The translations under genes were made by a program, and so were the position numbers. A DNA stretch of 64,000 nucleotides from Macrostomum lignano (lineage: Eukaryota). Positions 14,272-44,275 of this stretch are shown here, in pieces (the first letter of the stretch is position 1; every line of letters starts with the position of its first letter). The notes under the pieces are model-generated. The model did no database searches and was not told the DNA's origin. It saw only the letters and a program-made list of their open reading frames with translations. Location of the stretch: contig NIVC01000438.1 in assembly GCA_002269645.1 (NCBI GenBank), forward strand, positions 349,379 through 413,378, in the 5' to 3' direction.

Positions 14272-14478
14272 CACTGGCCAGCTGAAGCCGAAGCAGGCGG
14301 GCCTCACAGAGCAGAGCTCGGCGCATTCCAACCTGCCGAGACCTGGCGCCGACTCCATGGCAGCTGGAGCCGAGATGCTGTGCAGTTTTACGGCAGCAAA
14401 CATGATTTGGGATGTCGTGACTGCCGAGAATGCGAGTCCAGACAGAGACAGCAGCAGAAGGAGCGGGCCTTGCCTCAT
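14272..14478 (-). pseudogene. Lectin unit A: signal peptide + 3'-truncated PAN-like exon, no F-lectin exon
   Basis: MRQGPLLLLLSLSGLAFSAV...ECAELCSVRPACFGFSW, then an abrupt switch to a cagtggtgtcgaaac...poly-G element. Confidence 0.8.
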
Positions 14479-15356
14479 GTCTCAAGACTTGCTGTGTAGC
14501 AGGGCTGATGGAGACTTGTGCATGGCCAAACTTCACTGCGTGTCTCCTTATAAAAATTGCATCCAAGCCCTAATGGAAGCCTAGCTAATAGCGGGGCAGT
14601 CGAACAGGAAATTGAAACGATGCGAAAGCAAACAAAAGAGTTTCACGCTCTACCGGAAGTGTTTACCGGAAGCGTCAGAGAAAGTCAGCTTCATGGGATG
14701 TTGGCTTAGTCTTAAATTTTATTCATGCATGAATGATAAATCTTCTATCGGGAGGAGGAGCTACTATGCATGATGCATTATGGCATACCCTGGTAGCTTT
14801 TGAATTCTAAAAGCGATGCCTAATGTATCTTTTTTTCACTACATTTAGAAACTTTTTTGCTTTGAATATTGTCGGAACAGCAACTTTTACCCAGGATGAT
14901 TGACAAGCAAAGGCGATGAGAAAAAAATCAACGGGGCCGTGAAAAACATCATTTGGTCTGTGTCTAAGCTCATTTGGTCTGTTGGAAAATAAGATTTTCT
15001 TTGGCAGCCTACTTCTTCGTTTCGGTTAGGGTTGCGGTTTCTGGTTGCGAGTTCGAATCTTCCACTGAGCTCGGCAAGGACCAACTTTTTCCAGAATCGG
15101 TCCGACTGTCACTACCGACTTGCAGTCAACCAACTGTCTAGGATGTGCCTCGCCTCACACTTGTTTGCTACCCAATTTGTACGGTTGGTTTAGTTGCTGC
15201 AGATTCGAGCTCGTGACTTAAGCGGCGCACGCTCGTATGCCAAATTTGAAATAAACTTTCCGTAAAATAGCGTTTAAAGAAGTAGAGTTTAGAATGGATG
15301 TGCACATTTTTGTGAAAATGCTGATAACGGTTCTGCGAAAGTCTGCAATAGCGTGA

Positions 15357-15432
15357 CTGAGTGCCGTAGCCCAGCGGTCTACCGCGACGCTCTTACATGC
15401 CTGCGGCCCGGGCTCAATTCCAACTGCAGTCA
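15357..15432 (+). other. Degenerate tRNA-like / tRNA-derived SINE head
   Basis: A-box-like tagcccagcgg and B-box-like gggctcaattcc at tRNA spacing; stems pair poorly. Confidence 0.4.
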
Positions 15433-16164
15433 CAGTAATTTGGGGCTAAAATCGAATCTCGGCTTGGCTCGATCTGCTCGTGCAACTAACGCCCTTAAGG
15501 CCGGCCAACCCTCAAGGCACAATGAAGTGTACATGTGCTTGTGCGTGTGACTGCGTATGTATCAGTGCGCTTGTGTGCCTACTTAGGGGAGTCAGCGCAA
15601 TGGGCAGTAATGCCTCTCGCCGGTTGTGTGACAATGTCGCTTAAACTGCGCCAGGGTGCACACAGCCCCTGCCAAAAATCATAGCGTGCCTGCATTTACA
15701 TGTGCGAGCGTATGTAGAAGCTGCTAGATATGCAATTTCCTCAAATTGTATGCAAACAACAATATCAGCTGGTTATGAAGCCTTACTTGTTTGTACTTGT
15801 CAAACAGTTCCTGGTTTGTCAAGACCCACCACCCTAAAAAGAAATTAAAGCACAAAAAAGTAGAAACAATGTCTATATATCAATGGGGTGAATTCAGAAA
15901 TTCAAGCCCAGGGAGACCGGTTTGGCATATGAGCTACCGTATACAGGGCAAACATAGCAAGCAGCTTTCTTTGACACCGACTTCGAACAAATTATGCTAG
16001 GACAATAGCCAATTGGATCCCGGACATTGTTTGTCTTCACTTCTTTTTCCATTTCGTATTCGACTTTCTTAGTCTTCACTCACGAATAGATTTTTACTAG
16101 GAGAAACACAGCGAAGATTTTCCACAAGTCTCAATCAACCCAGGTGCGAGGTAAGTCTTGAAAC

Positions 16165-16857
16165 ATGAGGCAATCCACTCCTGCTGCTGTCTCTGTCTGG
16201 ACTCGCATTCTCGGCTGTCATGACATCCCAAATCATGTTTGCTGTCGTAAAAGTGCACAACATCTCGACTCCAGCTGCCATGGAGTCTGCGCCAGGACTC
16301 GGCAGGTTGGAATGCGCCGAGCTCTGCTCTGTGAGGCCCGCCTGCTTCGGCTTCAGCTGGCTGCAGGGTCTGTGCCGGCTCTTTGACTGGCTGGCGTTCA
16401 GCAGCCCGGATGGCTGGCAGGTCTCGGAGTCATGCGACGTGTACACCATGACTATAATACGTAAGTATATTGATTGCATAGTTGTTTAAGAAATGAAATC
16501 AAGTGACAGAAACTCGATGACGCCATTGCAACTCAACAGGACCCGTCCAGCCCAGCCTTGCTGGCTGCAACCAGAGCTCCACAAGAGGCGGATTCTGCGA
16601 ACGAGCTATCGATGGAAACAGGGAAACAGGGACCAAATCTTCATGCATCTGTCCTGAAGCAATGCCGACGACGATGTCGTCGGATTGGTGGGAGGGGTAG
16701 CTGGCCGCTCCATCGCTTGTCTCTTACGTCACCATCTACAACAGGCAGGACTGCTGCACTGAGTGACTCAACAAATTCTCGCTGCAGGTGGACGGCGTCG
16801 AGTGCAACCGAGTGAGCCTGACGGTGCCGTTCTCCGTGGCCAACTTCAGCTGCCTTT
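16165..16857 (+). pseudogene. Lectin unit B (inverted copy): PAN exon + F-type lectin exon, disabled
   Basis: 5-nt deletion in the signal peptide relative to unit A (frameshift); donor gtaagt at 16461; lectin exon has a frameshift after AIDGNR and in-frame stops (WWEG*LAAPS, DCCTE*LNK). Confidence 0.85.
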
Positions 16858-17257
16858 AGGCGAACGCTGGAGCCTCATGCATGTCAGCGGCTCAGTGCGG
16901 AATGCGGATGCAAATCGCGTCCAATATGGAAACATAGGCAGTGGTGTTTACAGCTCGCCTTTAAAGAACAAGTGCGCTCGTACAATCGAATAACATCAAA
17001 TACTGCAAACATTAAGCTATCTCAAATTTTAACATTTAGCTAGCTACTATTACGGCCAGGAAGTCAAATTTTAGGAAACTTTTGAAAGTGTCGAGCTGAT
17101 TACATAACATGTGGCATTGCAATATTTAATTTGTTTTCTTAGTCTTAGTTAATTTGTTTCATTCAGCGCTTTTAAATCTTGGATCTCATGTAAGGCATGA
17201 TATGTACTCTGGTGATTGGAGTCGCAACTGTCCGCAGCCGTTGCAGGTGTGTGCTGT

Positions 17258-17480
17258 GTACACTGTGATACTGCTGTGTACTGTGATACTGCTGTGTACT
17301 GTGATACTGCTGTGTACTGTGATACTGCTGTGTACTGTGATACTGCTGTGTACTGTGATACTGCTGTGTACTGTGATACTGCTGTGTACTGTGATACTGC
17401 TGTGTACTGTGATACTGCTGTGTACTATGATACTGCTGTGTACTGTGATACTGCTGTGTACTGTGATACTGCTGTGTACA
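17258..17480. repeat. 18-bp minisatellite (tgtgtactgtgatactgc), ~12 copies
   Basis: Near-perfect tandem array; gives the VILLCT / DTAVYC pseudo-ORFs. Confidence 0.93.
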
Positions 17481-17954
17481 CGGGTAAGTTACAGTAAGAT
17501 AATAATAATAATGTATTACACCTGCCCTAATGGCCAGATGTGCAACCTACAGCTCAGCCGCAGCTATTGCGCGGTGCATCTGAAGGCTGCGTACGGCTGT
17601 TCAGTCCGAGGACTGGGGGGTCGCCATATCCACCCTCAATTACCCCAACTAATACGACTGGCACCCATTTTACAGCTCGGTGAACTGAAGCAATGCAGAG
17701 TTCTTTGGTACCTGTTACTAAAACGTACCAAAAATATCGAGAAGACGAAGAGGGTTCTAGTGAGCAGTAGTTTGTTAGTAACCTGTATATTTAGTAGCAG
17801 TAGTAGGGAGCGAGGTGGGATTAGATTGGTGCTATGTCTGCTGTTTTCAAATGCAAGTACATGTAAGCCTAGAGAGGGCATAATTCTTTAACCAATTGCC
17901 GCCTGCAAACGTCGGCTGGCAAACGTCGGCTGGCAAACGTCGGCTGGCAAACGT

Positions 17955-18062
17955 CGCTATCCCCAGAGTTCAGTGTCTTGCTCAAGGACACAAATTGCTT
18001 CTAGTGGGATCAGGAATCGAACCCACGACCTACAAGTGGTGTGTCAGACGCTCTGACCACCC
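17955..18062 (-). mobile_element. tRNA-derived SINE fragment with a central gtgtccttgagcaagacact box
   Basis: Minus strand reads gtggtcagagc (A-box-like) ... gggttcgattcc (B box) ... gtgtccttgagcaagacactgaactc, resembling the conserved central box of V-/Meta-type SINEs. Confidence 0.6.
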
Positions 18063-18477
18063 TCTTAAGTTAAAGTGGTATGAATACGTAAAAAGAACAT
18101 TGGGTATGCGAGCTTTTATATATCCTATATTAATTATATCCCATATTTATTATACTTAGTCTATAGACACGAAATACCGCTTAAGGAGGGAGCTCACACA
18201 AACGTACGAGGAACCCCCCCCCCTCTTGCAAAGCGGCACCGGACTCACGACCCGGTGCAACTGTTTAAACAACATTCAAGTGAACTGCTCTCTGGTGAAG
18301 GTCGGGCGGTTGCAGCTTGGGCGGCTCTATGCTTAACAGCAATAACAGGGTCAAAGAGTTGCAGCCATCAGATTTAAGTGGACTGAAGATTGCCACGCCT
18401 CAATATGGCAAAAGGCGAAGCAAGATAAGACAAGATTGCCGAAAGCGTGGCATGTATAATCAGCCACTGATAATGGC

Positions 18478-18625
18478 TCACTCGGTTGCACTCGCTGCAG
18501 TTCATGCGCAAGGAGAACTCGTTGAATCGGCCAGTCTGTTATAGATGGTGACGTAAGAGTAAGATACAAACGATGGAGCGGCCTGCTGCGCCTCCCACAA
18601 TTCGATTTGGATTCTGCCTTGCGTC
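18478..18625 (-). pseudogene. Lectin unit C: partial F-type lectin fragment
   Basis: Decayed WWEGQ..APSFVS..YVTIYN..ECNRV homology with indels. Confidence 0.75.
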
Positions 18626-19068
18626 CTTAAGGTAGAATAAAAAATTACTTAATCAATTTCGAGATGATATCTCTAGAAATCTACCGATTAAGAGAAGCAA
18701 CCTGATTCAGTGTAGTGGAGCGATGGCCCTTCTCCATCAGCAGCCCGCTTTATGGATCAAATTGAAAGTATCCACACGGAACATCGACACGAAGGGCTTC
18801 AAACTTATAAAATATGTCAGTGCTGTTTGATTTGAAAACCGATTCGACTTGCTAAATGCTTTTTGGGGTCCCATAAACTAAAAAGCAAAAATACTTAAAC
18901 TTCCAATCTGCAAGGCATACTCATTTTTGAATGCTTGAAAGTTTCTGCAGAAGGTTCTTAAACTTTTATTGATTGCTCCTGTTTTCATATCACGGCCGTT
19001 CAGTTTCTCAAAATTACAGCTTGCAGTTCCATTCTGCAGGTCGCTGAGGCCATTCGCCACCAGCTCAG

Positions 19069-19889
19069 CTACAGCCTGTAAGCCTCGATCTCGCAAATGG
19101 TAAGGTACCCGGTGCGCAGGTTCGTCACCCGAACTTGTCTACCGAAGGCGTTGCAGCTAAAGTTGGCCACGGAGAACGGCACCGTCAGGTTCACTCGGTT
19201 GCACTCGACGCCATTCACCTGCAGCGAGAATATTTTTAGCCAATTAGTGCAGCAGTCCAGCCTGTTGTAGATGGTGACGTAAGAGACAAACGATGGAGTG
19301 GCCAGCTGCCCCTCCCACCATTCGAACGGGTTGTTTTCAGTGTGGGCGCAGGAATCTCCATAGTAGTCTTGGTTCCTGTTTCCGTCAATTGCTCGTCCGC
19401 AAACGTTCGACCCGTGCGTTGAACTCTGCGAGCAGCTTTCGAGCTTCAGCTGAGTTTGTGGCTGTGAGTCTGGAAGTTATTTGCGGTCAAAATAATGTTA
19501 CCACGAGCTTAATTGTCGCGTTCAATTTAGGCACACTATAAATTTGCACAGAGTGAATTAGTCAAGTTCCTAATACTAGTGCATAACATCTTACCGACAA
19601 TCCTGGTGTACACGTCACATGACTCCGATGCCTGCCAGTCATCCGTGCTGCTGAACGCCAGCCAGTCAAAGAGTCGGCACAGACCCTGCAGCCAGCTGAA
19701 GCCGAAGCAGGCGGGCCTCAAAGCGCAGAGCGTGGCGCAGTACATTGAATCTCTGCCAGGCAGGGTCTCCATGGCAACTGGAGTCGAGTTGCTGCGCAGT
19801 TTGACTGCCATGAATTGGATGTGGATGCTCATGGCAAACGAAACTTCCCATGTAGAGCATAGCAGCAGCAGCAGCAGAATTAGCTTCAT
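19069..19889 (-). CDS. Lectin unit D: secreted PAN-like + F-type lectin protein (intact; exons 19889-19595, 19469-19069)
   Basis: Signal peptide MKLILLLLLLCSTWEVSFA; CATLC...C.GFSW..GLC.L PAN core; phase-1 GT-AG intron; AIDGNRNQDYYGDSCAHTENNPFEWW...YNRLDCCTNWL...CEIEAYRL*. Confidence 0.9.
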
Positions 19890-21101
19890 CTTTAGCTAGC
19901 AGAAGCTGCAGGTGTCAGTGTTCAGTTTCACGTCGATTTTAAGAGTTGAGGTTTTTTCGTAGTGTGCGACGTCTATGATTATTGGCACGCTCTATCCCTC
20001 TTCCAGACTAGGCAAGCCGCTTGCTTCATTTTGACTTTGCCCATGCATGGAAGCATGGCCGTGAGTTTGCTCTACAAAGAAGGAAGATACACCAGCTAGT
20101 TAGTGTGAGATTGGCGGGCTGTCTTGCTGTGTAAACGACAGGTCACGAGAAAAATGTTTTTAGGCTGACTACATTTAATGGGTGCAAAGCTTTTAGAAGG
20201 AACAAGCAAATTTTTAACTGTCAAATATTATTGGTGACAGCCGTGCGCGGGGTTTTTGTCGCCATGACGACGGATACTCAACAAAAGCAATGGGAAGCGG
20301 CAGAAGTAGATGAAATATCTTGTATTGAGTATGAGTATTTAGTAATTCGCTAAACTATCTGCTGTGAGTAATAGAGTGAATAAAACTGTATCAGATTTAT
20401 TGAAATTCGAAGCCAATATTGCTTTAAGTCTACCCAGTGAAAGGTAGTTGCTGTTTTAAGAAACACCCCTGTTTGGCCAATCGAATTACCGCTGACATTT
20501 TGAAACTAATGCGTAAATCTCCGTTTCCTAGGCGCCAATCCTGACAAAGTGATCAAAGTTAATGGGCGCAGAGTTGAATACCACTGTCTATAGCATCAGA
20601 CAACACAATAAAACGCACGTTGCTCAGATCGACTCCGAGTTTCTCTAACCATTGACCAACTCAATATAAAAGACACGTGCATAAACTACCGACATCACTA
20701 GCCGCAAACAGATTTAAAGGAGTTACACGACAGCACGGACTGCAGCTACCTGGTCAGGCAGAAACTGTCGAAAATTACAGAGTTACAATCTACTGTTGCA
20801 TTACGGTCAATACTCGTACCTTTGAATTAAGCATTTTGCAAGTAGGAAATTTTGCAGCAAGAACATTCAGACCGGTACTTCGAAAACTGCCGCTTAGAGA
20901 CTTGAAGCTATTATACTTTTTGACGGTCCAAATATCATCAGACATACTGCCTAAATGAAATAATACTGCCCAGATTTAACAGTTGATTTCTACTCTGCAT
21001 GCTTGATATATTTGATAAACGTGTTTTCTATGATCTTCGCGTTAGTTACAATGCTGCCTTACTGTTTTGAGTTCTTTGAGTTGACATCGAGACGAGCTCA
21101 G

Positions 21102-21503
21102 CTACAGCGTGTAAGCCTCAATCTCGCAAATGGTCAGGAACTGGCTGAGCAGGTTTGTCACCCGAACTCGGCTGCCGAACGAGTCGCAGCTGAAGGTTGG
21201 CCACGGAGAACGGCACCGTCAGGTTCACTCGGTTGCACTCGACGCCATTCACCTGCAGCGAGAACTCGTTGAGACAGCCAGGGCAGCAGTTCTGCCTGTT
21301 GTAGATGGTGACGTAAGAGACAAACGATGGAGCGACCATCTGCCCCTCCCACCATTCGAACGGGTTTTTATTGGTGCGAGAGCAGGCACCTGAGTATGAG
21401 TCTTGGTTTCGGTTTCCGTCTACTGCCCGGCCACAACGGTAAGGACCCAAGGTTGAGCTCTGCGTGCAGCCATCAAAAGATAGACGATTTGTTCGCCGCA
21501 ACT
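21102..21503 (-). pseudogene. Lectin unit E: orphan F-type lectin exon with a +1 frameshift and no PAN exon
   Basis: Acceptor ttccag intact; exon is 402 nt versus 401 in intact copies (extra C in gccaacCttcagc); binding residues altered (ACSRT, RQNCCPGC). The single indel could be an assembly error. Confidence 0.75.
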
Positions 21504-22649
21504 CTGGAAGTGACAGTCATACTTTTGCTTGGAGATTTAGAGATTTAAATGAATACACTCGTAATTGTACAGCTCACGGATTTTCGACAGGCTCCACTTT
21601 TTAACAGCCGCGTACATGCTTTGCGTCGCCATGACAACCGAAAGGCCGAACGCAAACAATAGAAAAAGCAGCAGGATTGCCCTCATGGTTTACTAGAAAT
21701 TTTGATCAGTTGCTCCATGCGAGTCATTTTTGGAAATCATCGACACTGCTATATAACGGGGGAGGGGTAGCCATTGAAGCAAGCAAAGTCATTGGCTGAA
21801 ATATATAATATGTTGTACCTCTTGTTGTCCGCAGAATAACTCAACTTCCTGTGGGTGAGGCGGCTCAAATCTGAAGTCTTTGATAGTAACGTCGGGTAGT
21901 TGTGCTGCCAGCAGACTTTCCTTCGGGTCTCAGTATCCAATGAGGTGAGGGCCCCAACAGAACGGAGAAATAGCTAACGAAGACGGACGAATTGAGCACA
22001 CCGTCCAAAATTGCAACTCCAAACCACCACCTAGTCAGCAGACCCTCGTCGGTTGTCTAGGTTTCGAATGGGAACTGAGTCACAACAAGCAGTACAATCG
22101 AGGACTCTTAAACAGATACTCGAGGATGAGAAAGCGGAAGGAAGACAATTTACGGAAACGAGCCTGATGGGGTCCGGATTTCTAGACCGAGGAGCTGATT
22201 GCGCAAGTGCCAAGCATGATATCACGTGAGAAACTCACGTGGTATCTATTTTGAGCAACTGATGTCAATTACATGGCTTATAAGGCAAGGGCGCCGAAGT
22301 CCGTGAGCTCTGCCATAAACAAGTTTCCAGGAAAAGCCCAGAAAAAAGGCTTATCACGTGACTAGCTCACATGACAAGGAAAAAGTGAGCCACTTGTGAA
22401 TCTACATAATTCAAAGCTTGGACTGCGATAAGTCTAGAGAACCCAGGGCGTTTAAAACAAAAATGGCGGGTTGGAATAAAAATGCTTGTGATGGATGCAG
22501 CTTGAGTTTATCTTATTGAAAGTAAAAGTGTAAATGTTATCCTCAATTTGCAGACTCCACGTTTACAGACTGCTCAAATTCGACAATTGATAAAAGTCTT
22601 ATATAACTTTTTATTCATACGAGAATTACCAAAAATTTGTCTAAAGAAT

Positions 22650-23900
22650 TGAATATCTTGTAAAAGCGACAAAATTGTTTCTGGCTGCATTCTTGCCTGA
22701 AAAAGCTAGCAATGGATTGGTTCCACTTCAGCATTTCTGACAGCAGTGACGCTTGCATCACCTGTACGCGTACTTACAGCGCATGGCGGTGCTCTAAATT
22801 ATTGCTGTGTTTTTGCAGCAACGGCTTTCACCCGTTATTCAATGGCCTAAATCGCAGATTGGGAGCTGCTCTGAGCAAACACAAGCGAGAGCGCAACAGG
22901 ATGCGGTCAAGCATCGCGACAAAAAACGTTTCGATGACAGTTTTAATTCCCTCATCTTGGCATTGCCGAGGCCTCTCCATAACAACTTCAACAAGCCCTT
23001 AAGTCCCGCTTCCACTGCGCCCTTGAATCAGGCAGATGCTTTATGAGATCATCTTTGCTCGGCTTAAATTTCTTTTAAAAACTATTTGATGAAGGCAACC
23101 ACTGTCGCAGTGCCATCCAGAATCATTTCCAAGAAGTGAAACTCGTTCTAGGATTGGTAAAAGCTCCGCAATTCATAGATCTGTTTGACTTCACTTTAAC
23201 CTTACTCAAAACCTTCTCGGAAGCAGGTCCTCACCGCACCGCAGCCAGCCCTGGAGTATGTATAAGACAACATGGTATGTCTGGCAGGTTAGTCTGGTGT
23301 CACAAGTTCTGTCATTAAAACACCTGGTGACAGGGCTGCGGGTCACTTGAATAACTGAAGTGGAAGAACCCTACACAACAGTTTCTTGGAAATGAGCCAG
23401 AGTCTGGTAAGGAACGCATATTTGTCGTATCATTACTGCGTTTGGTATGCTCTCGAGAATGCGGTTTCGGTTTCGGTACGACAGGCCGGCCTCTCCAGCT
23501 CATTTCTAAGAAATTCGAGTGTTAAATTCTTATTCGTGAGTTCTTAGTTTTAAATATGGATTTCTGTTCTTTGGTGATTGAAGTTTATTAAACTCTGCAC
23601 GGCGCGACACAGAATGTGTTTTCGTTCATGTAACAATGTGGGATTGACTAGATGCCAAAATACCCGAAAATCCGTTGCACAGCTTTTGATGCAAGTGCCG
23701 CTAGCGCACTGCAAACTTGCTGGACTCTTTGTGTGCTTGAGATTAGAGATTGGGATTGGGATTTTGGACTGAGACAGAGACCAAAACTGTACACGCAATA
23801 CTGCAGCCAAAATAGTGATCTCAACGGCAAGCAGACATTGTGGACTGTCGTATCGACCGGTGAGCACTCAATTTCCGCGTTACTCCCTTCCGACTCACGT
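22650..23900 (-). mobile_element. Possible decayed DNA-transposon (hAT-like transposase) remnant
   Basis: Broken reading frames with weak resemblance to hAT motifs (RTCDTRLTCQ; IETFFVAMLDRIL); interrupts the lectin array. Not verified. Confidence 0.25.
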
Positions 23901-24082
23901 ATCCATGCGTAAACGGTAAACTGGATAGTGAAATGGACAAGGGTCACCACATAAGCAGAGTCAATTCTATTTAGGAAGTCAATAGAGATTTTCAAACTTT
24001 CATCAGTGTTGCTTTAATCTTCTAATTTCAATATAATTGAAATTTCAATATTCATCACTGCTGACTTGCAATAACAGCTTGC

Positions 24083-24891
24083 TTAGTAGAGAGTATAGGC
24101 CTCAAGCTCGCAAATCGTTACAGGAAGTTTACAAAGGTTAACAACTCGAACTCGTCTGCCGAAGGCGTTGCAGCTGAAGTTGGCCACGGAGAACGGCACC
24201 GTCAGGCTCACTCGGTTGCACTCGACGCCGTCCACCTGCAGCGAGAATTTGTTGAGTCGCTCAGCGCAGCAGTCCTGCCTGTTGTAGATGGTGACGTAAG
24301 AGACAAACGATGGAGCGGCCAGCTGCCCCTCCCACCATTCGAAGAGGTTGCGGTCCGTGTGGGTGCAGGACAAATCATTAAAATAGTTTTGGTTCCTGTT
24401 TCCGTCGATAGCGTGCTTGCATAATCCGCTGTATATAAAGGCAGTGGAGCTCTGATGGCAGTCAGCAAAGTTCAGCCGTTTCAAGTCTATAAGAGCCATG
24501 TTGATGGAGGAAGCAGGTTGACTTGATCAGGTCTCGTGTGAGTAACAGCTCTATAAGCATATCATCAGAGTGAACAGCAGTTTTTACCTTTTGGCCCGGT
24601 GTACACATCGCATGACTCCCAGACCTGCCAGCCATCCGTGCTGCTGAACGCCAGCCAGTCAAAGAGTCGGCACAGACCCTGCAGCCAGCTGAAGCCGAAG
24701 CAGGCGGGCTTCACAGAACAGAGCTCGGCGCATTCCAACCTGCCGAGTCCTGGCGCCGACTCCATGGCAGCTGGAGTCGAGATGCTGCGCATTCGAACTG
24801 CCGAGTACACCATTGGCGTCTCCATGACAACAGAAACTGCGATCGCAAAAAGAATTAGCAGTAGAAGTAGGCGTTTTTGGCGCATTTCCAA
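24083..24891 (-). CDS. Lectin unit F: secreted PAN-like + F-type lectin protein (intact; exons 24891-24588, 24486-24083)
   Basis: In-frame phase-1 join; AIDGN motif and canonical H-x26-R-x-D-x4-R (SCTHT...RQDCCAER). Confidence 0.92.
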
Positions 24892-25947
24892 GTTGAAAAC
24901 CTAATTTGTAAGGAACAGGCTACTTTTATCTCTTTGCTCTTGTCTCAAGCACTGACGAAATCTAGTTCCTTTTTATTCTAGTGTCCTTTAGTCTCGACCA
25001 CACACCTGAACTCAAAACTCAAGCTGTATTCCCATGGACGCCTCAAAAATACGATTCAGTGTGCGTGTGCTGAAAGTGGAGACTTTTATCTTTAAGGCAT
25101 CACCTTTCTTGCTTAATACCCTATTGTAGCTTCTGCATCTCAAACTAGTGGTAGCCGTCAAATTTCAAATTGGCAGCTCTTGAACTCAGCATAAAACACA
25201 CAGGCTGTAGAATCTAATTTAGCGAACAGGTGCACAGGCTCTTTGATAGCCCCTGTGGGAATTTTCTATCTGGGACCGTTACCATAGCCAGTCATGGTTT
25301 GCCAGGTTGACGGGCTGCATCTCATCCCATGTATTGGGAGAAGCTGGAGCAGGTTGAGCAGGTTGAGCAGCTGGGATATTGCGCTGCATTGGATAAGATT
25401 ATCAAAGCCAGGTAAAGTTTCAGTCATTTTTTAAAGCCATCGTAAGATAAGATCGTTCTTAGCTCCTATCTTCGTAGTGTAAAAGTTCCAACGTACGACC
25501 GAACTTACGCTTACGACAGCTTTATCTTGCGACCCCAAAGAGCTTTACGCTCGTATATTTATGGTCATAGCAAAGCAAACCTTTCCTGGAAACTGTACTT
25601 GCTTGAAGTTAAAAGGCAGAATTGGTGCGCCCACCTTTAACTGGAGGTTGTGCGATGGCGTTCCCGGAGGCTCTGAATTAGTTTAAGAATTCAGTGGAAA
25701 AAGAGGTTAAGAAGCGACTGCCTGAAAGTTGCTAGCGAAAGTCTCGAAGCCGAAGACCCTACCCCTTACACTGCGGAGCCTCTCTAGTCTTTCGGATTTC
25801 AATACTGGTGGAAACTCGTACAGTCAATTATTTTAATGTGTCAATCGGGATTCTCAAACTGTCAGCTATGTTGCTTTTATTTTCTAATTTCAATATAATT
25901 CTTCCTCTGCTTTTATATTCGCAACTGGCTCGCAATAACTTCCTTGG

Positions 25948-26290
25948 TTACAGCGTATAATCCTCAATCTCGAAAATCGTCAAATCATTGTAGTGCAGAC
26001 TGTCCAGAGACTCTTCATAAAGATGAACAACCTGAAACTCGGCTGCTGAATTGGCGTTGCATCTGAAATTGGCGCCGAAGAACGAATCCGTCAGGATCAC
26101 TCGGTTGCACGCGACGGCGTTCAAGTCCAGGGAGAATTCGCTGTGTCGGCCAGTCTGCTTTGGTCTGTTGTCCTGCCTGTTATAGATGGTGACGTAAGAG
26201 ACAAGCGATGGAGCGGCCAGCTGCTCCTTACAAAATTCGATTTTGATTTGGCCTTTTGGTTTGGCTCCTGTTTTAGTCGATTAGCAGAAC
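25948..26290 (-). pseudogene. Lectin unit G: promoter/5'UTR fused to an internally deleted F-type lectin exon
   Basis: APSLVSYVTIYNRQD and CEIE-like C-terminus recognisable with indels; upstream 26330-26570 matches the promoter block of units D, J and K. Confidence 0.75.
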
Positions 26291-26726
26291 CTGGTGTTAG
26301 CGTTTCAGTGTCCAACATCAGCGGAAGCAAACGGTTGCTTTATAGAGGTGAGGTTTTCTCGCGAGGAGCGACACTCCCTGATATTTCGCTCTTCCAGACT
26401 GGAGAAGCCGCTTGCCTGATTTCCAGAGTTTGCCTGTGGAAGCATGGTCGTGAGTTTGCTAAAAAGGAGGATGCACAGCTAGCGAGTGTGATTGGCGGGC
26501 TGTCCTGCTGTGTAAACGAAAGTCACGCGAAAAATATTTTGAAGCTTGCAGCAAACATCTAATGTGTGCACAAAGGGCCTGTCAACTTAAGCTCATAAAG
26601 CGGAGCCCGAGTAACCTATTGATTGCTCCGGTTTTCATTGCAGCAGTACAGTTTCTCAAATTCACTGCTTTCAGTTCCATTCAGCAGATGCACTCGAGGT
26701 TGCCGAGGCCATTCGCCACCACCAGT

Positions 26727-27555
26727 TCAGCTAAGCGTGTAAGCCTCGATCTCGCAAATAAACAGGTACAGACTGCGTACGCTGACTCGAACTCGGCTGC
26801 CGAAGGCGTTGCAGCTGAAGTTGGCCACGGAGAACGGCACCGTCAGGCTCACTCGGTTGCACTCAACGCCGTCCACCTGCAGCGAGAATTTGTTGAGCCG
26901 CTCAGCGCAGCAGTCCTGCCTGTTGTAGATGGTGACGTAAGAGACAAGCGATGGAGCGGCCAGCTGCCCCTCCCACCATTCGAACAGATTTTTTCTGGTG
27001 TGGGCGCAGGAATCTCCATAGTAGTCTTGGTTCCTGTTTCCGTCAATTGCTCGTCCGCAAACACCCAACCAAGACGTTGAGCTCTGCGAGCAGCTTTCGA
27101 GTTTTAGCCAAGTTGGCGGCTTCGGGTCTGGAAGTTATTAGCGGTCAAAATACCTGTTCCACGACTGCCACCTTTAAAAACTTGAGCAATATGAATAATG
27201 CACACCATGAATTCGTATAGAGTTCTCAGTGCTTGGTGTATGCCGTCTTACCGACCATCCTGGCGTACACATCGCATGACTCCGAGACCTGCCAGCCATC
27301 CGTGCTGCTGAATGCCAGCCAGTCAAAGAGCCGGCACAGACCCTGCAGCCAGCTGAAGCCGAAGCAGGCGGGCCTCACAGAGCAGAGCTCGGCGCACTTC
27401 ATCCTGCCGAGTCCTGGCGCCGACTCCATGGCAGCTGGAGTCGAGATGCTGCGCATTCGAACTGCCGAGTACACCACCGGCGTCGCCATGACAACGTAAA
27501 CTCCGATCGCAAAGAGAATTAGCAGTAAAAGTAGGCGTTCTTGGCCCATTTCCAA
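26727..27555 (-). CDS. Lectin unit H: secreted PAN-like + F-type lectin protein (intact; exons 27555-27252, 27127-26727)
   Basis: In-frame phase-1 join; canonical H-x26-R-x-D-x4-R (SCAHT...RQDCCAER). Confidence 0.92.
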
Positions 27556-28419
27556 GTTGAAAAGCTTTAGTTTGTAAGGAACAGGCTACTTTTCTCTTTC
27601 CTCTTATATTATGGGAACTTGCAAAATCTTCCCTTTTATCTTCAATGGCCTTGAGTCTTGGCTACACACCTGGACTAAAACTCATGCTTTATTCCAAGAT
27701 GTCTAAAAAATTCCGCTTGCTGAAAGTTGAGGCTTTTTGCTTCCAAGCATCAAATTGTCGCTTCATTTCTTTTTTCGGCAATGCATCTCAAATTCGTGAT
27801 AGGCTGAATTCAAATTAGCAGCTCTAGCACTCAGCATCAAATTCTTAGGCAGGAGAAAGTAAACAAGGTAGCGAACAGAAATTCAGTCATGACTCTTTGA
27901 TAGCCTCGTGGGAATTCGGGGACGACAATTAGCCTGGCGCCAGTAAATAACTTTGAGGGGGGCATTGAAACTGCACAGTAGCATCAGGGGCAAATAGGCA
28001 ATATTTCTGATTGAGGGACACGTCTCAGGGGGGGGGGGCAAGCCTGCTGGAATGGAGGCGCCACATGCTTTGCCAGCCGATTGGGGGGGGGGGAGGAGGT
28101 TAGCATAATTGGTGAGCCCACCTTTAACTGGAGGGGTTGTGCGATGGCGTTCCCGGAGGCTCTAAATTAGTTTAAGAATTCAATGGGAAAATCCAAATTT
28201 TATCAGTCATTTCTGTGTCAGTTTATCTGTATAAGAAACTGTTTATGAACGAACTGGGCCACTGCTTGCTCAAGTGGGCTGGTTAAGAAGTAGTGTCTTT
28301 TGGTTTATATACTGGTAGAAACTTATGCACGAGTCAATAGGGATTCTCAAACTGTCATCTATGTTGCTTCAATTTTCTAATTTCAATATATTTAATCCTC
28401 TGCACTCGAATGAAAATCA

Positions 28420-28535
28420 TGCAGTCCTGCCTGTTGTAGATGGAGACAAAAGATACAAGCGATGGAGCGGCCAGCTGCCCCTCCCACCATACCATTTGGA
28501 TTTGGCCTTCAAATTTAGCTCATGTTTTTGTCGAA
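28420..28535 (-). pseudogene. Lectin unit I: short F-type lectin fragment
   Basis: WWEGQLAAPSLVS...IYNRQDC, then sequence breaks off. Confidence 0.75.
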
Positions 28536-28984
28536 AGCGTAGAATAAAAATATAATGATCATTTGACTTACTCGAGATGACATCTCTGAAACTCTCCGAT
28601 GAGAAGTAACTCGATTCACTGGAGTGGAGCGGTGGCTCTTCTCCATCAGCAGCTGTGATTTATGAATGAAATTGTAATCATCCACACAGCCTGAGGATTA
28701 AGAACTTCCAAGTAATAAATAAATATCAGTGCTGTTCAATTAAAAACCGAGTCATGGCTAGCCAACAGCTTTCTGAGGTCTCACACCCAAAGCAACAGAA
28801 ATCAATACTTTCTAATCGCAAAGCATAACTCATTTTTTGAATGCTTGAAGGGATCTAAAAAAATATTTCAAGTTTATTGGTTGCTCTGGTTTACATCACA
28901 GCCATTCAGTTTTTCAGATGACATTTCTGCAGTTCCATTGTGCAGATGCACTCGAGGTCGACGCGGCCATTCGCCACCACCAGT

Positions 28985-29811
28985 TCAGCTAAGCGTGTAA
29001 GCCTCGATCTCGCAAATAAACAGGTACAGACTACGTACGCTGAATCGAACTCGGCTGCCGAAGGCGTTGCAGCTGAAGTTGGCCACGGAGAACGGCACCG
29101 TCAGGTTCACTCGGTTGCACTTGACGCCGTCCACCTGCAGCGAGAATTTGTTGAGTCGTTCAGCACAGCAGTCCTGCCTGTTGTAGATGGTGACGTAAGA
29201 GACAAGCGATGGAGCGACCAGCTGCCCCTCCCACCATTCGAACGGGTTGTTTTCGGTATGGGTTCAGGACAAGTGCATGTAATCTTGGTTTCTGTTTCCG
29301 TCAATTGCTCGTCCGCAAACGCTCGAGACGATCGTTGAGCTCTGCTTGCAGCTTTCGAATTTTAGCTGAGTTTAGGGCTGAGTCTGGAAATTATTTGCGG
29401 CCAAAGTACTACTAATTGCACCAGGAGCTTGTCAATAAACTATAGGATTATTAATGCTCATAAATAATTTACACCGAGTGAATTAGTCAAGTTCCTAATA
29501 CTGGTGCATGACCTCTTACCGACAATCCTGATGTACACATCGCATGACTCCGAGGCCTGCCAGCCATCCGTGCTGCTGAACGCCAGCCAGTCAAAGAGCC
29601 GACACAGACCCTGCAGCCAGCTGAAGCCGAAGCTGGCGGGCCTCAAAGCGCAGAGCGTGGCGCAGTTCATTGAATCTCTGCCAGGCAGGGTCGCCATGGC
29701 AACTGGAGTCGAGGTGCTGCGCAGTTTGAGCACCTTGAATTGGAGTTGAACGCTCATGGCCAACGAAAATTCCAACGCAGAGCAAAGAAAAACCAGCAGA
29801 ATTAGCTTCAT
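28985..29811 (-). pseudogene. Lectin unit J: full-length but disabled PAN + F-type lectin gene (exons 29811-29520, 29383-28985)
   Basis: Three independent lesions: PAN Cys to Ser (RPASFGF), 2-nt deletion at the start of exon 2 (399 vs 401 nt), and TGC to TGA at the SCxHT cysteine. Confidence 0.88.
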
Positions 29812-30508
29812 CTTAGCTAGCAGAAGCTGGTGTCAGCTTTTCAGTGTTTCAGCGGAAGCAAACGGTTGATTTATAGAGCATAGACTTTTCCGCAAGGAGC
29901 GACAACTTTATTGATTATTGACACGATATTTCGCTTTTCCAGACTGGAGAAACCGCTTGCTTCATTTCGACTTTGCCTGTGGAAGCATAGCCGTTAGTTT
30001 TCTCATCAACAATGAAGGAAGATACACAGCTAGTGAGTGTGATTGGCGGGCTGTTTTGCTGTGTAAACAAGCCGCGCGAAAAATATCTTGATGCTGGAAA
30101 CATCAAATGTGTACACAATTTCGATGTCTCAGCTTTTAGGCAAAGTGAAGCAAGATTTTAACTGTGAAATATTAACTGTGACAGCCGTGTTTAGGCTTGT
30201 TGTCGCTATGTTCTATGACTTCCAACTATGTATAAATTGTCAGCTTTTTTCATCGAAAATGAGTCATGACTAGCCAACTGCTTTATGAGGTCCCATACGT
30301 AAAGCAACAAAAATCGAAACTTCCAAGCCGCAAGACATATCCATTTTCGAATGCTTGAAGCTTCCTTCAGTCACAGAAGACTTAAAGTTTTACTGATTGC
30401 TCCGGTTTCCATTGCAGCAGTTCAGTTTCTCAAATTCACTGCTTTCAGTTCCATTCTGCAGTTGCAGTCGAGGTTTCCGCGCGAGGCCACTCGCAACCAC
30501 CAGCTCAG

Positions 30509-31327
30509 CTACAGCCTGTAAGCCTCGATCTCGCAGATGCCCAGGTACTCGTTGAGCAGGTTTGTCACCCGAACTCGGCTGCCGAAGGCGTTGCAGCTGA
30601 AGTTGGCCACGGAGAACGGCACCGTCAGGTTCACTCGGTTGCACTCGACGCCGTCCACCTGCAGCGAGAATTTGTTGAGCCGCTCAGCGCAGCAGTCCTG
30701 CCTGTTGTAGATGGTGACGTAAGAGACAAGCGATGGAGCGGCCAGCTGCCCCTCCAACCATTCGAACAGATTTTTTCTGGTGTGGGAGCAGGAGCCTGCA
30801 CGGTAGTCTTGGTTCCTGTTTTTGTCAATTGCTCGTTCACAAACGCCAAACCAAGACGTTGAGCTCTTCGAGCAGCTTTCGAGTTTTAGCCGATTGTGCG
30901 GCTGCGGGTCTGGAAGTTATTTGCGGTCAAAGTACCTGTTCCACAAGCTTTCCATCTAAAGCTGAAGCAATATTGCATAATATGAAATCGTAAAAGTAAA
31001 TTAGTAAAATTCCTAATGCTTGGTGTATGTCGTCTTACCGACCATCCTGGTGTACACATCGCATGACTCCCAGACCTGCCAGCCATCCGTGCTGCTGAAG
31101 GCCAGCCAGTCAAAGAGCCGGCACAGACCCTGCAGCCAGCTGAAGCCAAAGCAGGCGGGCCTCACAGAGCAGAGCTCGGCGCACTTCATCCTGCCGAGTC
31201 CTGGCGCCGACTCCATGGCAGCTGGAGCCGAGATGCTGTGCAGTTCGACTGCCATGAACTGGATGTGGACGGTCATGGCAAACGGAACTCCTAATATAGT
31301 GCACAGCATCAGAAGAATGAGCTTCAT
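30509..31327 (-). CDS. Lectin unit K: secreted PAN-like + F-type lectin protein (intact; exons 31327-31039, 30909-30509)
   Basis: In-frame phase-1 join; AIDKNRNQDYRAGSCSHT...RQDCCAER...CEIEAYRL*. Confidence 0.92.
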
Positions 31328-32508
31328 TTTTGCTAGCAGAAGCTAGTCTCAGTGTTTCAGTGCCTACCATCAGCGGAAGCAAACGGTTGCTTTATAGAGT
31401 TGAGGTTTTCTCGTGATGGGCGACGCTTGTGATTATTGGCTCGATCCATCTCTCCTCCAGGATGGGCAAATAGCTATTATTTTTATCTTCAATAGCCTTA
31501 AGTCTAACAACTTTAGTGTGCTCAAAGCTGAGGCTTTTATCTTCAAGTCATCATTTTTTCGCTTAACGTCTTTCTTTGCCTCTGCATCTCAAGCCTGTGG
31601 TAGGCCAAATTTGAAATTGGCAGCTCTTGAACTCAGCATAAAACACACAGGGTATAGAATGTGAATAGGTAAGCAGGTCGCACTAGCTCTGTGATAGGAC
31701 CGTCACCAAAGCAACGATTGTGCTAGTCAGAGCTTTTTGGAGGGATGCATCTCATCCCCTGCATTGGGGAAGTTGATGCAGGTTCAGCAGCTGGGATATT
31801 GCGCTGTGTTGAATGACTTTCAAGCCAGGTCAAGTGCCAGTCAGTTTGTCAGGATCCTGATAGAGCTACTGAACAAGCGACCTAGTCTTTCAGGACTTGA
31901 TATTGACACCTGGTAGAATCCTGGTAGAAATCTTAAGCATGCTTTTCGGGATTTTACTCACACCAAGAGTGGGCTGATAGGTTTAATTTTCTTTTTTTGA
32001 GCTTATGAAATTTACGATGAAGAACACTGAGAAGGCTGGAACGGTAGGGCTGTTGAGAAATCCGACAAGTCCGACATGGAATCATAGTGTCTTATGATTC
32101 CATGTTGGCTGCTAAACATCCGGGTTCTGATACGCGGGAATTGATTAACTAGGAAAACTCGAAATCGATATAGTTTCTTTTACAACGCTTGTCGTCGCTC
32201 GAGCGGTTGATCACGAGAGAATGCTCGCGCTAGGGAACAATAAAGGTCAAACTCTGGTTCGATACAGACTGGACTGTTAAATTTAAGTTGCCGATTGTTG
32301 TAATTAACATCATGCAAAAATGTATTTTATTACGAGCTATATGGGCACTGCTTGCCTCCGGTTAGTAACAACATATTTTGTCATTAAGCAGACCTGCCTT
32401 CACTGTGTACTTCGTAACCCGGCATAAAAATAGCGAGTAAAATAAGCGTATTAAGAAAATAGAGTGTTTAAGATATTCAATCAAAATTTAGTAGCTTGAC
32501 CGATCACA

Positions 32509-41964: not shown

Positions 41965-44275
41965 GTCGACCCTGCCTCTCTCTCTCCCTTCGACTCTGCC
42001 TCTCTCCCTGCATTCGACCCTGCCTCTCTCTCTCTCCCTTCGACCCTGCCTCTCTCCCTGCATTCGACCCTGCCTCTCTCTCTCCCTTCGACTCTGCCTC
42101 TCTCCCTGCATTCGACCCTGCCTCTCTCTCTCTCCCTTCGACCCTGCCTCTCTCCCTGCATTCGACCCTGCCTCCCTCTCCCTCCCTTTGACCCTGCCTC
42201 TCTCTTTCCATTTGACCCTGCCTCCCTCTCCCTCCCTTTGACCCTGCCTCTCTCCCTCCCTTCGACCCTGCCTCTCTCCCTCCCTTCGACCCTGCCTCTC
42301 TCCCTCCCTTCGACCCTGCCTCTCTCTCCCCATTTGACCCCGCCTCCCTCTCCCTCCCTTTGACCCTGCCTCTCTCCCTCCATTTGACCCTGCCTCTCTC
42401 TCTCCCTTCGACCCTGCCTCTCTCTCCCCATTTGACCCCGCCTCCCTCTCCCTCCCTTTGACCCTGCCTCTCTCTCTCCCTTCGACTCTGCCTCTCTCCC
42501 TGCATTCGACCCTGCCTCTCTCTCTCTCCCTTCGACCCTGCCTCTCTCCCTGCATTCGACCCTGCCTCTCTCTCTCCCTTCGACTCTGCCTCTCTCCCTG
42601 CATTCGACCCTGCCTCTCTCTCTCTCCTTCGACCCTGCCTCTCTCCCTGCATTCGACCCTGCCTCTCTCTCTCCCTTCGACCCTGCCTCTCTCCCTGCAT
42701 TTGACCCTGCCTCTCTCTCCCTTCGACTCTGCCTCTCTCCCTGCATTCGACCCTGCCTCTCTCTCTCCCTTCGACTCTGCCTCTCTCCCTCCATTTGACC
42801 CTGCCTCCCTCTCCCTCCCTTTGACCCTGCCTCTCTCTCTCCATTTGACCCTGCCTCCCTCTCCCTCCCTTTGACCCTGCCTCTCTCCCTCCCTTCGACC
42901 CTGCCTCTCTCCCTCCCTTCGACCCTGCCTCTCTCCCTCCCTTCGACCCTGCCTCTCTCTCTCCATTTGACCCCGCCTCCCTCTCCCTCCCTTTGACCCT
43001 GCCTCTCTCCCTCCCTTTGACCCTGCCTCTCTCCCTCCCTTCGACCCTGCCTCTCTCTCTCCATTTGACCCTGCCTCCCTATCCCTCCCTTTGACCCTGC
43101 CTCTCTCCCTCCCTTCGACCCTGCCTCTCTCCCTCCCTTCGACCCTGCCTCTCTCCCTCCCTTCGACCCTGCCTCTCTCTCTCCATTTGACCCCGCCTCC
43201 CTCTCCCTCCCTTCGACCCTGCCTCTCTCTCCCCATTTGACCCCGCCTCCCTCTCCCTCCCTTTGACCCTGCCTCTCTCTCTCCCTTCGACCCTGCTTCT
43301 CTCTCCCCATTTGACCCTGCCTCTCTCCCTCCCTTCGACCCTGCCTCTCTCTCTCTCCATTTGACCCTGCCTCTCTCCCTCCCTTCGACCCTGCCTCTCT
43401 CTCTCCATTTGACCCTGCCTCCCTATCCCTCCCTTTGACCCTGCCTCTCTCTCTCCCTTCGACCCTGCCTCTCTCTCTCCATTTGACCCTGCCTCCCTAT
43501 CCCTCCCTTTGACCCTGCCTCTCTCTCTCCCTTCGACCCTGCCTCTCTCCCTGCATTTGACCCTGCCTCTCTCTCTCCCTTCGACTCTGCCTCTCTCCCT
43601 GCATTCGACCCTGCCTCTCTCTCTCCCTTCGACTCTGCCTCTCTCCCTCCATTTGACCCTGCCTCCCTCTCCCTCCCTTTGACCCTGCCTCTCTCTCTCC
43701 ATTTGACCCTGCCTCCCTCTCCCTCCCTTTGACCCTGCCTCTCTCTCTCTCCATTTGACCCTGCCTCTCTCCCTCCCTTTGACCCTGCCTCTCTCCCTCC
43801 CTTCGACCCTGCCTCTCTCCCTCCCTTCGACCCTGCCTCTCTCCCTCCCTTCGACCCTGCCTCTCTCTCTCCATTTGACCCCGCCTCCCTCTCCCTCCCT
43901 TTGACCCTGCCTCTCTCCCTGCATTTGACCCTGCCTCTCTCTCTCCCTTCGACCCTGCCTCTCTCTCCCCATTTGACCCCGCCTCCCTCTCCCTCCCTTT
44001 GACCCTGCCTCTCTCCCTCCCTTCGACCCTGCCTCTCTCCCTCCCTTCGACCCTGCCTCTCTCCCTCCCTTCGACCCTGCCTCTCTCCCTCCCTTCGACC
44101 CTGCCTCTCTCCCTCCCTTCGACCCTGCCTCTCTCCCTCCCTTCGACCCTGCCTCTCTCCCTCCCTTCGACCCTGCCTCTCTCTCTGCATCCGACCCTGC
44201 CTCTCTCCTCGCCTCTCTCTCTGCATCCGACCCTGTCTCTCTCCTTGCCTCTCTCTCTGCATCCGACCCCGCCTC
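41965..44275. repeat. ~24-28 bp CT-rich minisatellite (ttcgaccctgcctctctccctccc), 2.3 kb
   Basis: Tandem variants; source of the long RE/G-rich pseudo-ORFs. Confidence 0.93.

Follow-up and report, generated by a model that had tools for sequence, protein, structure and literature searches.

A candidate lineage-restricted array of secreted PAN/F-type lectin genes in Macrostomum lignano, with signs of gene conversion and mosaic evolution

Introduction

F-type lectins, among them the eel isolectins and the oyster bindin, are a model for the diversification of carbohydrate recognition. The flatworm Macrostomum lignano is a promiscuous hermaphrodite and serves as a transgenic, RNA interference (RNAi)-amenable model for sexual conflict, regeneration, and bioadhesion. 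Here, we analyze a stretch of 64,000 nucleotides (nt) of its genome (assembly GCA_002269645.1, contig NIVC01000438.1, positions 349,379 to 413,378 of the forward strand; hereafter the window), which contains a tandem array of genes whose predicted products combine a signal peptide, a PAN/apple-like module, and one F-type lectin domain (FTLD).

The F-type motif was noted long ago in "planaria" (PMC5712786). The partner domains that reviews of F-type lectins name are the C-type lectin (CTL), pentraxin, CCP, transmembrane (TM), and FA58C domains; PAN/apple is not named. In the sperm bindin of the oyster Crassostrea gigas, the diversity of the FTLD arises partly via recombination between repeats; the gene is present in a single copy, contains 1-5 internal FTLD repeats, is alternatively spliced, and has been shown to evolve under positive selection.

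The locus described here is read, with a probability of roughly 0.72, as a lineage-restricted array of compact, secreted, and soluble PAN-FTLD lectins that evolve with conversion and mosaic formation.

Results and Discussion

Organization of the array

Searches of the window by tblastn with unit F and by nhmmer with a profile of five units return the same set, namely 11 units at 14277-31365 and none elsewhere in the 64 kb. The E-values of the unit matches range from 1e-9 to 1e-298, and chance is therefore excluded for all 11 units. The array extends over ~17 kb, and ten of its units lie on the minus strand, B alone being on the plus strand. Four units (D, F, H, and K) are intact and seven (A, B, C, E, G, I, and J) are broken. 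A preliminary description of this DNA had claimed at least 11 tandem units with exactly these four intact, which is borne out by tblastn, by nhmmer, and by a reading of the sequence. The units are as follows.

Unit A, 14277..14520, minus strand: 5' flank and the first ~205 nt of exon 1, with the ATG at 14478; truncated at 14277.
Unit B, 16123..16896, plus strand: pseudogene with a frameshift in the signal peptide, three in-frame stops, several indels, and a truncated 3' end.
Unit C, 18434..18616, minus strand: old exon-2 relic, its core 68% identical.
Unit D, 19069..19889, minus strand: intact, 231 amino acids (aa); exon 1 at 19595-19889, intron at 19470-19594 (125 nt), exon 2 at 19069-19469.
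Unit E, 21098..21696, minus strand: pseudogene; exon 2 at 21098-21539 with a +1 frameshift near 21195, and a vestigial exon 1 at 21584-21696.
Unit F, 24083..24885, minus strand: intact, 233 aa; exon 1 at 24588-24885, intron at 24487-24587 (101 nt), exon 2 at 24083-24486.
Unit G, 25948..26573, minus strand: exon-2 relic at 25948-26282, 67-77% identical, abutting a promoter-proximal-like segment at 26282-26573.
Unit H, 26727..27549, minus strand: intact, 232 aa; exon 1 at 27252-27549, intron at 27128-27251 (124 nt), exon 2 at 26727-27127.
Unit I, 28421..28501, minus strand: fragment of 70-80 nt of the exon-2 core, 94% identical.
Unit J, 28985..29811, minus strand: pseudogene; the exon 1 open reading frame (ORF) is open, the intron is 136 nt long, and 2 nt are deleted just after the acceptor.
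Unit K, 30509..31327, minus strand: intact, 229 aa; exon 1 at 31039-31327, intron at 30910-31038 (129 nt), exon 2 at 30509-30909.

Units A and B form a head-to-head inverted duplication in which A is the left arm; the two 184-nt arms (14277-14460 and 16178-16361) are 95% complementary. The 67 aa encoded by A match the N-terminus of the M. lignano gene model P0001 exactly. In UniProt, P0001 continues from these exact 67 residues with 29 residues identical to exon 1 of B and then with a J-like unit; to judge from the sequences, either the left edge of the array differs between the window and the assembly behind UniProt, or P0001 is chimeric.

The broken units have lost different parts. The core tract of B is 96% identical to that of H, and the remainder of its exon 2 is 51-64% identical. 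Unit E has lost the sugar-binding triad (H52R, D81N, and R86C), and an internal deletion has taken from unit G its exon 1, its intron, and the beginning of exon 2. In unit J, Cys62 of the PAN core is replaced by Ser, the codon for Cys50 has become TGA, and the sugar-binding motif is lost. We have also considered the relics C, G, and I as one downstream fragment co-duplicated with each gene, a reading that was rejected: G has its own promoter-like segment and the internal deletion. C and I, unlike G, belong to duplicated two-unit modules, C, a spacer, and D in one being homologous to I, a spacer, and J in the other. Neither in the rest of the window nor at two other loci of M. lignano do the A-B, B-C, D-E, and E-F spacers have further copies, and hence no transposon could be named.

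It is extremely unlikely that collapsed or mis-joined haplotypes, or long-read indel errors, have generated spurious copies and pseudogenes in the assembly. The single-base frameshifts of E and J are typical of long-read error, and the DV1 genome of M. lignano, a hidden polyploid rich in repeats, contains 180 Mb of duplicated blocks that are at least 95% identical. However, the units differ by 8-35% in protein and by far more in their flanks, and the pseudogenes carry several independent lesions, including substitutions to stop codons. In addition, the lesions of J (in the independent models P0013 and P0001) and the peculiarities of D and K recur in gene models of another assembly.

The F-type lectin domain

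Exon 2 of D, F, H, and K, as well as of the paralogues, matches the Pfam family F5_F8_type_C_2 (PF22633) with 37-47 bits, the cut-off being 27.8 bits. All six matches among the PDB sequences are F-type lectins (E 4e-27 to 1.5e-8), the best being FBP32 (3cqo, 4e-27), with the eel agglutinin AAA (1k12) at 5e-11, and the pneumococcal fucolectin-related protein and Sm-hPAF among the others. AAA can be aligned without a gap from residue 34 to residue 86, and the AAA number corresponds to the H number minus 90. According to the residue definitions for the fucose triad and for the Ca2+ and structural sites (PMC5712786), F and H have the triad His52, Arg79, and Arg86 in place, together with Asp81, Cys82-Cys83, Asp38, Asn40, Arg41, Ser49, Cys50, and Cys146-Glu147. 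The stretch AIDGNR...SC.H...ICEIE aligns residue for residue with the Ca2+-site and structural positions (Cys50-Cys146, Glu147, and Arg41-Glu149). The scores above the cut-off, the PDB matches, and the aligned triad firmly support the assignment of the domain made in the preliminary description, which had named a hidden Markov model (HMM) search as its check; the lack of any HMM match, which would have refuted it, is not observed.

The motif H-x26-R-x-D-x4-R, which had been claimed for the family, is present in F, H, and K; the claim fails for D, where the last Arg (Arg86) is Trp. In K, the triad is kept, Gly39 beside the Ca2+ ligands is replaced by Lys, and EWWEG has become EWLEG. The Arg86 to Trp change of D is also found in the gene model P0004 and the changes of K in P0003, and their recurrence in these independent models shows the odd residues to be real.

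The vicinal DCC (Cys82-Cys83) is present in all four intact genes and is lost in the paralogue P0175/P0008. The vicinal disulfide Cys82-Cys83 contacts C1-C2 of fucose. From the residues in place, we infer that the canonical pocket of F and H would be the binding site for ligands of the L-fucose type, with an axial 4-OH.

The cysteines C112 and C123, which are invariant in the family, flank the segment of the first complementarity-determining region (CDR1), the length of which varies. Unit F, with a canonical triad, is longer by two residues in CDR1 and by one in CDR2. The variation, including indels, is concentrated in the part of exon 2 that encodes CDR1 and CDR2, and CDR4 is invariant. This agrees with the earlier placement of the differences in the loops surrounding the pocket, mostly in the segments that form CDR1 and CDR2.

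An N-F-S sequon (VANFSCN; H residues 202-204, window ~26815-26823) is invariant in the core of every copy and paralogue, and is a candidate N-glycosylation site on the lectin.

The PAN/apple module

Exon 1 starts with a typical n/h/c-type signal peptide, for which a helix is predicted at residues 2-21, and encodes no second hydrophobic segment; these sequence features show the predicted proteins to be secreted and soluble. The module of ~75 residues that follows matches PAN_1 with 14-19 bits, at the same position, in eight of the nine family members scanned, and the gathering score of 21.4 bits is never reached. Exon 1 of F gives 15.9 bits and K gives no PAN_1 match in the Pfam scan. For this module, the suggested HMM search thus gives recurrent sub-threshold PAN_1 hits and no match above the Pfam threshold. 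When the PDB sequences were searched with a profile of the module, the sole matches were weak ones to the apple domains of TgMIC4 (E 0.18) and EtMIC5 (E 0.53).

The core C-x3-C-x5-C-x9-C is conserved across the family, with a spacing identical to that of EtMIC5, and its cysteines would form the two central disulfides. The five cysteines that had been counted in exon 1 are indeed there (C52, C56, C62, C72, and C92 of H), the fifth, C92, not being conserved in distant paralogues.

An AlphaFold 2 (AF2) model of the PAN domain only, calculated with an alignment of 16 sequences, has a predicted local distance difference test score (pLDDT) of 86.9 and a predicted TM-score (pTM) of 0.77. In a Foldseek search of the PDB with this model, PAN/apple modules and other proteins that contain PAN make up almost the whole of the top ~48 hits, with probabilities of 0.6-1.0 (at least 0.9 for most) and TM-scores of 0.47-0.60. 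The neighbors include EtMIC5, the HGF N domain, TgMIC4, SML-2, the apples of factor XI and prekallikrein, plasminogen, and SRK. We accept on the strength of the model that exon 1 would encode a divergent PAN/apple fold with a helix packed on a curved antiparallel sheet, and the PAN/apple assignment of the preliminary description is in this way supported at the level of the fold.

Homogenized tracts and mosaic genes

Two tracts stand out in the comparison of the units and are given here in the coordinates of H.

Exon-2 core tract, 26806..26982, minus strand: equivalents in B, D, E, F, J, and K; includes CDR4.
PAN Cys core tract of exon 1, 27265..27399, minus strand: 89-98% identity among D, F, H, J, K, and B.

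The exon-2 core tract encodes WWEGQLAAPS...NRQDCCAERL...FSVANFSCNAFG. Over these 177 nt, the intact genes are 92-98% identical, which confirms at the nucleotide level the near-identical core described earlier, and the dead units B, E, and J share the tract at 90-97%; eight units in all lie at 90-98%. In their introns and flanks, these units show an identity of 36-83%, for the most part ~50-75%. In the old relics, the core tract is 68% (C) and 77% (G) identical, and these values show the outcome in the absence of homogenization. The proportion of differing synonymous sites (pS) is 0.00-0.11 for H residues ~149-207, the beta-core of the FTLD. It amounts to 0.10-0.19 for the PAN Cys core and rises to 0.4-0.66 in the signal peptide, the linker, the CDR1-CDR2 region, and the C-terminal strands. 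The GC content at third codon positions (GC3) is highest, 0.83, in the homogenized tracts, as expected from GC-biased conversion. A Sawyer-type permutation test gives P<=0.0015 in six of the ten pairs.

These observations indicate that the near-identical core is a gene-conversion tract. The pS close to zero in the core, the sharing of the core by pseudogenes, and the diverged flanks together imply that its identity is mainly the result of concerted evolution and not only of protein constraint. It is very unlikely that it reflects nothing but strong purifying selection on the beta-sandwich, or a very recent duplication. It is true that CDR4, which takes part in sugar binding, is encoded by the core, as are the Cys-Cys pair and buried strands, all of them conserved across F-type lectins; however, the near-invariant synonymous sites lie beside segments with a pS of 0.4-0.66, the broken copies carry the same tract, and the permutation test is significant. 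The suggestion that the core is simply a constrained beta-sandwich is therefore not supported, and a recent duplication of whole units is excluded by the divergence of the introns and flanks. Nucleotide-identical cores in tandem families should not be taken as protein constraint until synonymous sites and pseudogenes have been checked.

The nearest neighbors of the units are discordant from segment to segment. H is a mosaic: its 5' flank and first 50 codons resemble F (0.93), its intron, CDR region, and 3' flank resemble K, and its C-terminal segment resembles J (0.97). The birth-and-death pattern proposed for the tandem array is supported by the duplications and by the seven dead units out of 11.

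A further reading, which we consider quite improbable, is a germline "cassette" system in which the live PAN-FTLD genes would be rewritten by conversion from live and dead neighbors, with pseudogenes acting as donors as in the chicken immunoglobulin (Ig) system. The core tracts would then serve as homology anchors for the reassortment of the PAN N-terminus, CDR1/CDR2, and the C-terminal strands, and individual- or line-specific repertoires would be used for the discrimination of mates, sperm, or microbes.

Selection

The ratios of nonsynonymous to synonymous change (dN/dS), calculated for D, F, H, and K by region and by pair, are nowhere significantly higher than 1. By region, dN/dS is 0.31 in CDR1, significantly below 1 (bootstrap confidence interval (CI) 0.21-0.84), 0.94 in CDR2 (0.18-6.2), 0.31 in the PAN core, 0.27 in the C-terminus, and 0.92 in the PAN N-terminal strands. 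In the comparisons that are not saturated, the corresponding ratio of proportions (pN/pS) is 1.23 for the CDR region of H and K (P=0.38), 1.8-2.2 for the PAN N-terminus (P=0.14-0.30), and 0.10-0.20 for the PAN core, where it points to purifying selection (P=0.005-0.04). The test for diversifying selection is under-powered, with four sequences, a pS that saturates at ~0.5, and recombination that violates the model. The variable parts evolve fast, at roughly neutral rates in the recent comparisons.

The preliminary description had anticipated positive or diversifying selection in the loops, which the values for CDR1 and for the best unsaturated comparison do not support. It is possible, although doubtful, that the array is a diversified repertoire under positive selection in the pocket loops, serving immunity or gamete and mate recognition in the manner of oyster bindin or the eel fucolectins. 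The variation and indels are carried by CDR1 and CDR2 with an invariant CDR4, as in the eel isoforms (PMC5712786), the variable parts lie at or above the neutral value in the least saturated comparisons, and the variable segments are reassorted by recombination, as reported for oyster bindin. Against this stand the low ratios of CDR1 and the C-terminus, the P values of 0.14-0.38 of the excesses, and the fact that there are only four live genes, two of them with non-canonical binding sites.

Gene structure

Each of D, F, H, and K consists of an ATG, two exons separated by one GT..AG phase-1 intron, and a stop codon, in support of the two-exon architecture of a secreted protein that had been claimed. 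The introns, counting that of J, measure 101-136 nt; the phase given earlier holds, and the upper limit of the length range (~100-125) is corrected. The paralogue BOX15_Mlig008430g1 (P0175) has, in the RNA-seq-derived NCBI annotation, one 81-nt GT..AG phase-1 intron exactly at the boundary between PAN and FTLD, which provides independent support for the two-exon model. A second paralogue, BOX15_Mlig024493g1 (P0009; 56% identical to H; L001 10001-10657, NIVC01001584.1), lacks the intron at this boundary, possibly as a result of intron loss or because it is a retrocopy. Both paralogues are solitary genes elsewhere in the genome, so that the cluster of the family is the present window.

Upstream of the ATG, two 5' classes can be told apart, and they track two types of signal peptide. 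One class, seen in D, J, and K, has a CCAAT box and a CTCTATAAA box as well as a conserved leader; the other is a distinct 5' region common to F and H. CCAAT and TATA-like boxes occur in the two classes and are read as each gene having its own promoter.

ORFs antisense to the lectin units (26562-27080, 172 aa; 28940-29338, 132 aa; and 26143-26562; all on the plus strand) were considered as coding and rejected, because their length is not conserved across the intact units and their composition mirrors that of the sense frame. They are probably a by-product of codon composition.

Relatives of the family

The best protein matches of the array are all uncharacterized M. lignano gene models. Identity amounts to 96.8% between D and P0004 and to 97.6% between K and P0003, and F and H have no public counterpart above 85%. 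The window is thus taken to stem from another haplotype, homeologue, or assembly than that underlying the UniProt models. By HMMER, an FTLD is found in 7,828 proteins out of 1.84 billion representatives, and among the best 150 of these, all that also cover the N-terminal module are from M. lignano. No PAN-FTLD protein from outside Macrostomum is found among the best 150 of the 7,828, which does not prove absence elsewhere. Of 5.8 billion proteins, the profile of the N-terminal module matched none outside M. lignano. Judged by the databases, the proteins would constitute a flatworm family confined to Macrostomum.

No paper in the searched literature connects Macrostomum with fucolectins, F-type lectins, apple, or PAN, or mentions the BOX15 gene identifiers. 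The lectin mentions in Macrostomum papers concern a Drosophila reference and a C-type lectin, and were set aside as irrelevant to the family. The earlier statement that this is not a described system holds for the searched literature and has to be qualified in that the proteins are already present in UniProt as automatically named "Apple/FTP/F5/8 type C domain-containing" M. lignano entries.

M. lignano has FTLD proteins of other architectures as well, such as Kringle with six FTLDs and WSC with FTLDs (the set P0020, P0022, P0028, P0118, and P0158). In other members of the same set, PAN-FTLD is apparently fused to Sushi/TM or fibrinogen-C domains, which in some cases looks like a merger of neighboring genes, P0028 with its internal signal peptide being an example. 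These sequences suggest a wider expansion of the FTLD in M. lignano.

Proposed mechanism and function

Within the PAN-FTLD lectin array proposed here, each gene encodes a signal peptide followed by one divergent PAN/apple module and one FTLD, the short linker between the two domains being split by the phase-1 intron. The sequences show that the array evolves by duplication, of two-unit modules and in one case inverted, by decay, and by frequent exchange between the copies. Gene conversion keeps two tracts near-identical in live and dead copies, namely the PAN Cys core and, in the FTLD, the beta-core together with CDR4, and the segments between the tracts are old divergent alleles-in-paralogs that recombination has reassorted into mosaics. 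CDR1, between C112 and C123, and CDR2 probably tune which fucosylated oligosaccharide is recognized, such that the four live genes may provide a few different specificities. Binding may be altered or weakened in D (Arg86 to Trp) and K (Gly39 to Lys, Trp to Leu). The PAN module could be a second ligand site, as in the galactose-binding apples of TgMIC4 and SML-2, or could serve oligomerization, and the physiological role would be extracellular glycan recognition at a mucosal/immune or a reproductive surface.

Several observations weigh against this proposal. PAN_1 stays below the Pfam gathering score in every member scanned, and the Foldseek E-values are modest (0.05-0.8). Sugar binding is deduced from motif conservation only, and two of the four intact genes, D and K, are substituted at conserved FTLD positions. 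The full-length AF2 model of H (alignment of 11 sequences) has a mean pLDDT of 46 and is unusable for loop mapping, and the loop positions consequently rest on the sequence alignment to AAA and FBP32. The whole-gene dN/dS among D, F, H, and K is high, 0.38-0.81. H and K have no AATAAA or ATTAAA hexamer within 300 nt of the stop codon. D, F, H, and K are all absent from the RNA-seq-based NCBI annotation, and no transcripts, proteins, or expression patterns were found for them in the literature and supplements searched; the supplements of a prostate in situ hybridization screen, a positional RNA-seq paper, and a three-species RNA-seq paper contain no fucolectin, apple, FA58C, or discoidin annotation.

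Part of this evidence, namely the substitutions in D and K, the dN/dS of up to 0.81, the lack of a poly(A) hexamer in H and K, and the failure to find transcripts, together with the seven dead units out of 11, would also fit a decaying locus in which even the four ORFs are unexpressed or functionless remnants. We regard such a state as unlikely, since the four frames of 229-233 codons are open with intact splice sites despite a pS of 0.4-0.66 over most of the gene. Moreover, purifying selection is significant in the PAN core, CDR1, and the C-terminus, and the CCAAT/TATA-like elements are conserved. D and K also have open counterparts with the same odd residues in an independent assembly, and paralogues elsewhere are supported by transcripts.

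The array of PAN-FTLD lectins is experimentally accessible. The four genes are small, have distinct CDR1 and CDR2, and lend themselves to easy expression and knockdown, making fucolectin recognition in a flatworm directly testable.

Other features of the window

Minisatellites with periods of 13-69 nt are extremely dense in the window (12-14 kb, 17252-17479, 32.7-46.2 kb, 55.2-57.4 kb, and 60689-63947), examples being a 24-mer repeated 95 times at 41966-44295 and a 26-mer repeated 125 times at 60689-63947. The lectin array is bracketed by such repeats and also contains one of them, located between B and C. The satellite at 56.5-57.4 kb has a copy of ~83% identity on the M. lignano contig NIVC01001584.1.

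On the plus strand, ORFs at 224-718 and 1228-1890 resemble exons of a family-X DNA polymerase (pol lambda/mu/TdT-like), with a GFSRGK...DCDLLITH motif; their matches to DNA_pol_lambd_f (1.9e-5) and DNA_pol_B_palm (5.9e-5) are both just under the Pfam gathering scores. A single 501-aa ORF at 49597-51102 (plus strand) encodes a rhodopsin-type G-protein-coupled receptor (7tm_1, 30.2 bits versus a cut-off of 30.5) that has a long third intracellular or extracellular insert. No Rfam RNA family is found in the 64-kb window.

Comparison with known systems

The FTLD of the array is the same domain as that of eel agglutinin AAA (1k12), striped bass FBP32 (3cqo), and the S. pneumoniae SpX-1 FTLD (2j1r/2j22), with the same triad, vicinal Cys-Cys, Ca2+-site residues, and Cys50-Cys146 bridge. 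The eel isoforms vary in CDR1 and CDR2 and are invariant in CDR4 (PMC5712786), a pattern that is also seen in the array. The array proteins differ from the known F-type lectins in that a PAN/apple module precedes a single FTLD, an extra Cys pair specific to the family surrounds CDR1, and the whole FTLD is encoded in one exon. The fold of the AF2 model of the PAN module is that of EtMIC5 (1hky), TgMIC4 (4a5v), SML-2 (2yio), and the N domains of HGF and plasminogen (TM-scores 0.56-0.60). Compared with known PAN/apple domains, the sequence of the module is sub-threshold, and it has four core cysteines and a non-conserved fifth, without the N-terminal Cys of the six-cysteine apples.

The likeness to oyster bindin lies in the contribution of recombination between repeats to FTLD diversity, and in a candidate self- or mate-recognition context in a broadcast-spawning or promiscuous invertebrate. 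The array differs from the single bindin gene in consisting of separate single-FTLD genes in tandem, for which positive selection is not demonstrated.

With other tandem families that evolve in concert, such as the major histocompatibility complex (MHC), the Ig V segments, and cases of pseudogene-templated conversion, the array shares short tracts that homogenize the framework, the reassortment of diverged segments, and the participation of dead copies. In contrast to MHC and Ig V, it gives no evidence of somatic conversion or of selection favoring reassortment, and its conversion pattern may be a passive by-product of the tandem arrangement. The array is nevertheless a clear case of framework homogenization combined with the reassortment of loop segments, and it adds an architecture, PAN/apple with FTLD, that is outside the reviews searched. 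F-type lectins and their diversification are well known; the PAN-FTLD genes of M. lignano are an undescribed, lineage-restricted lectin array.

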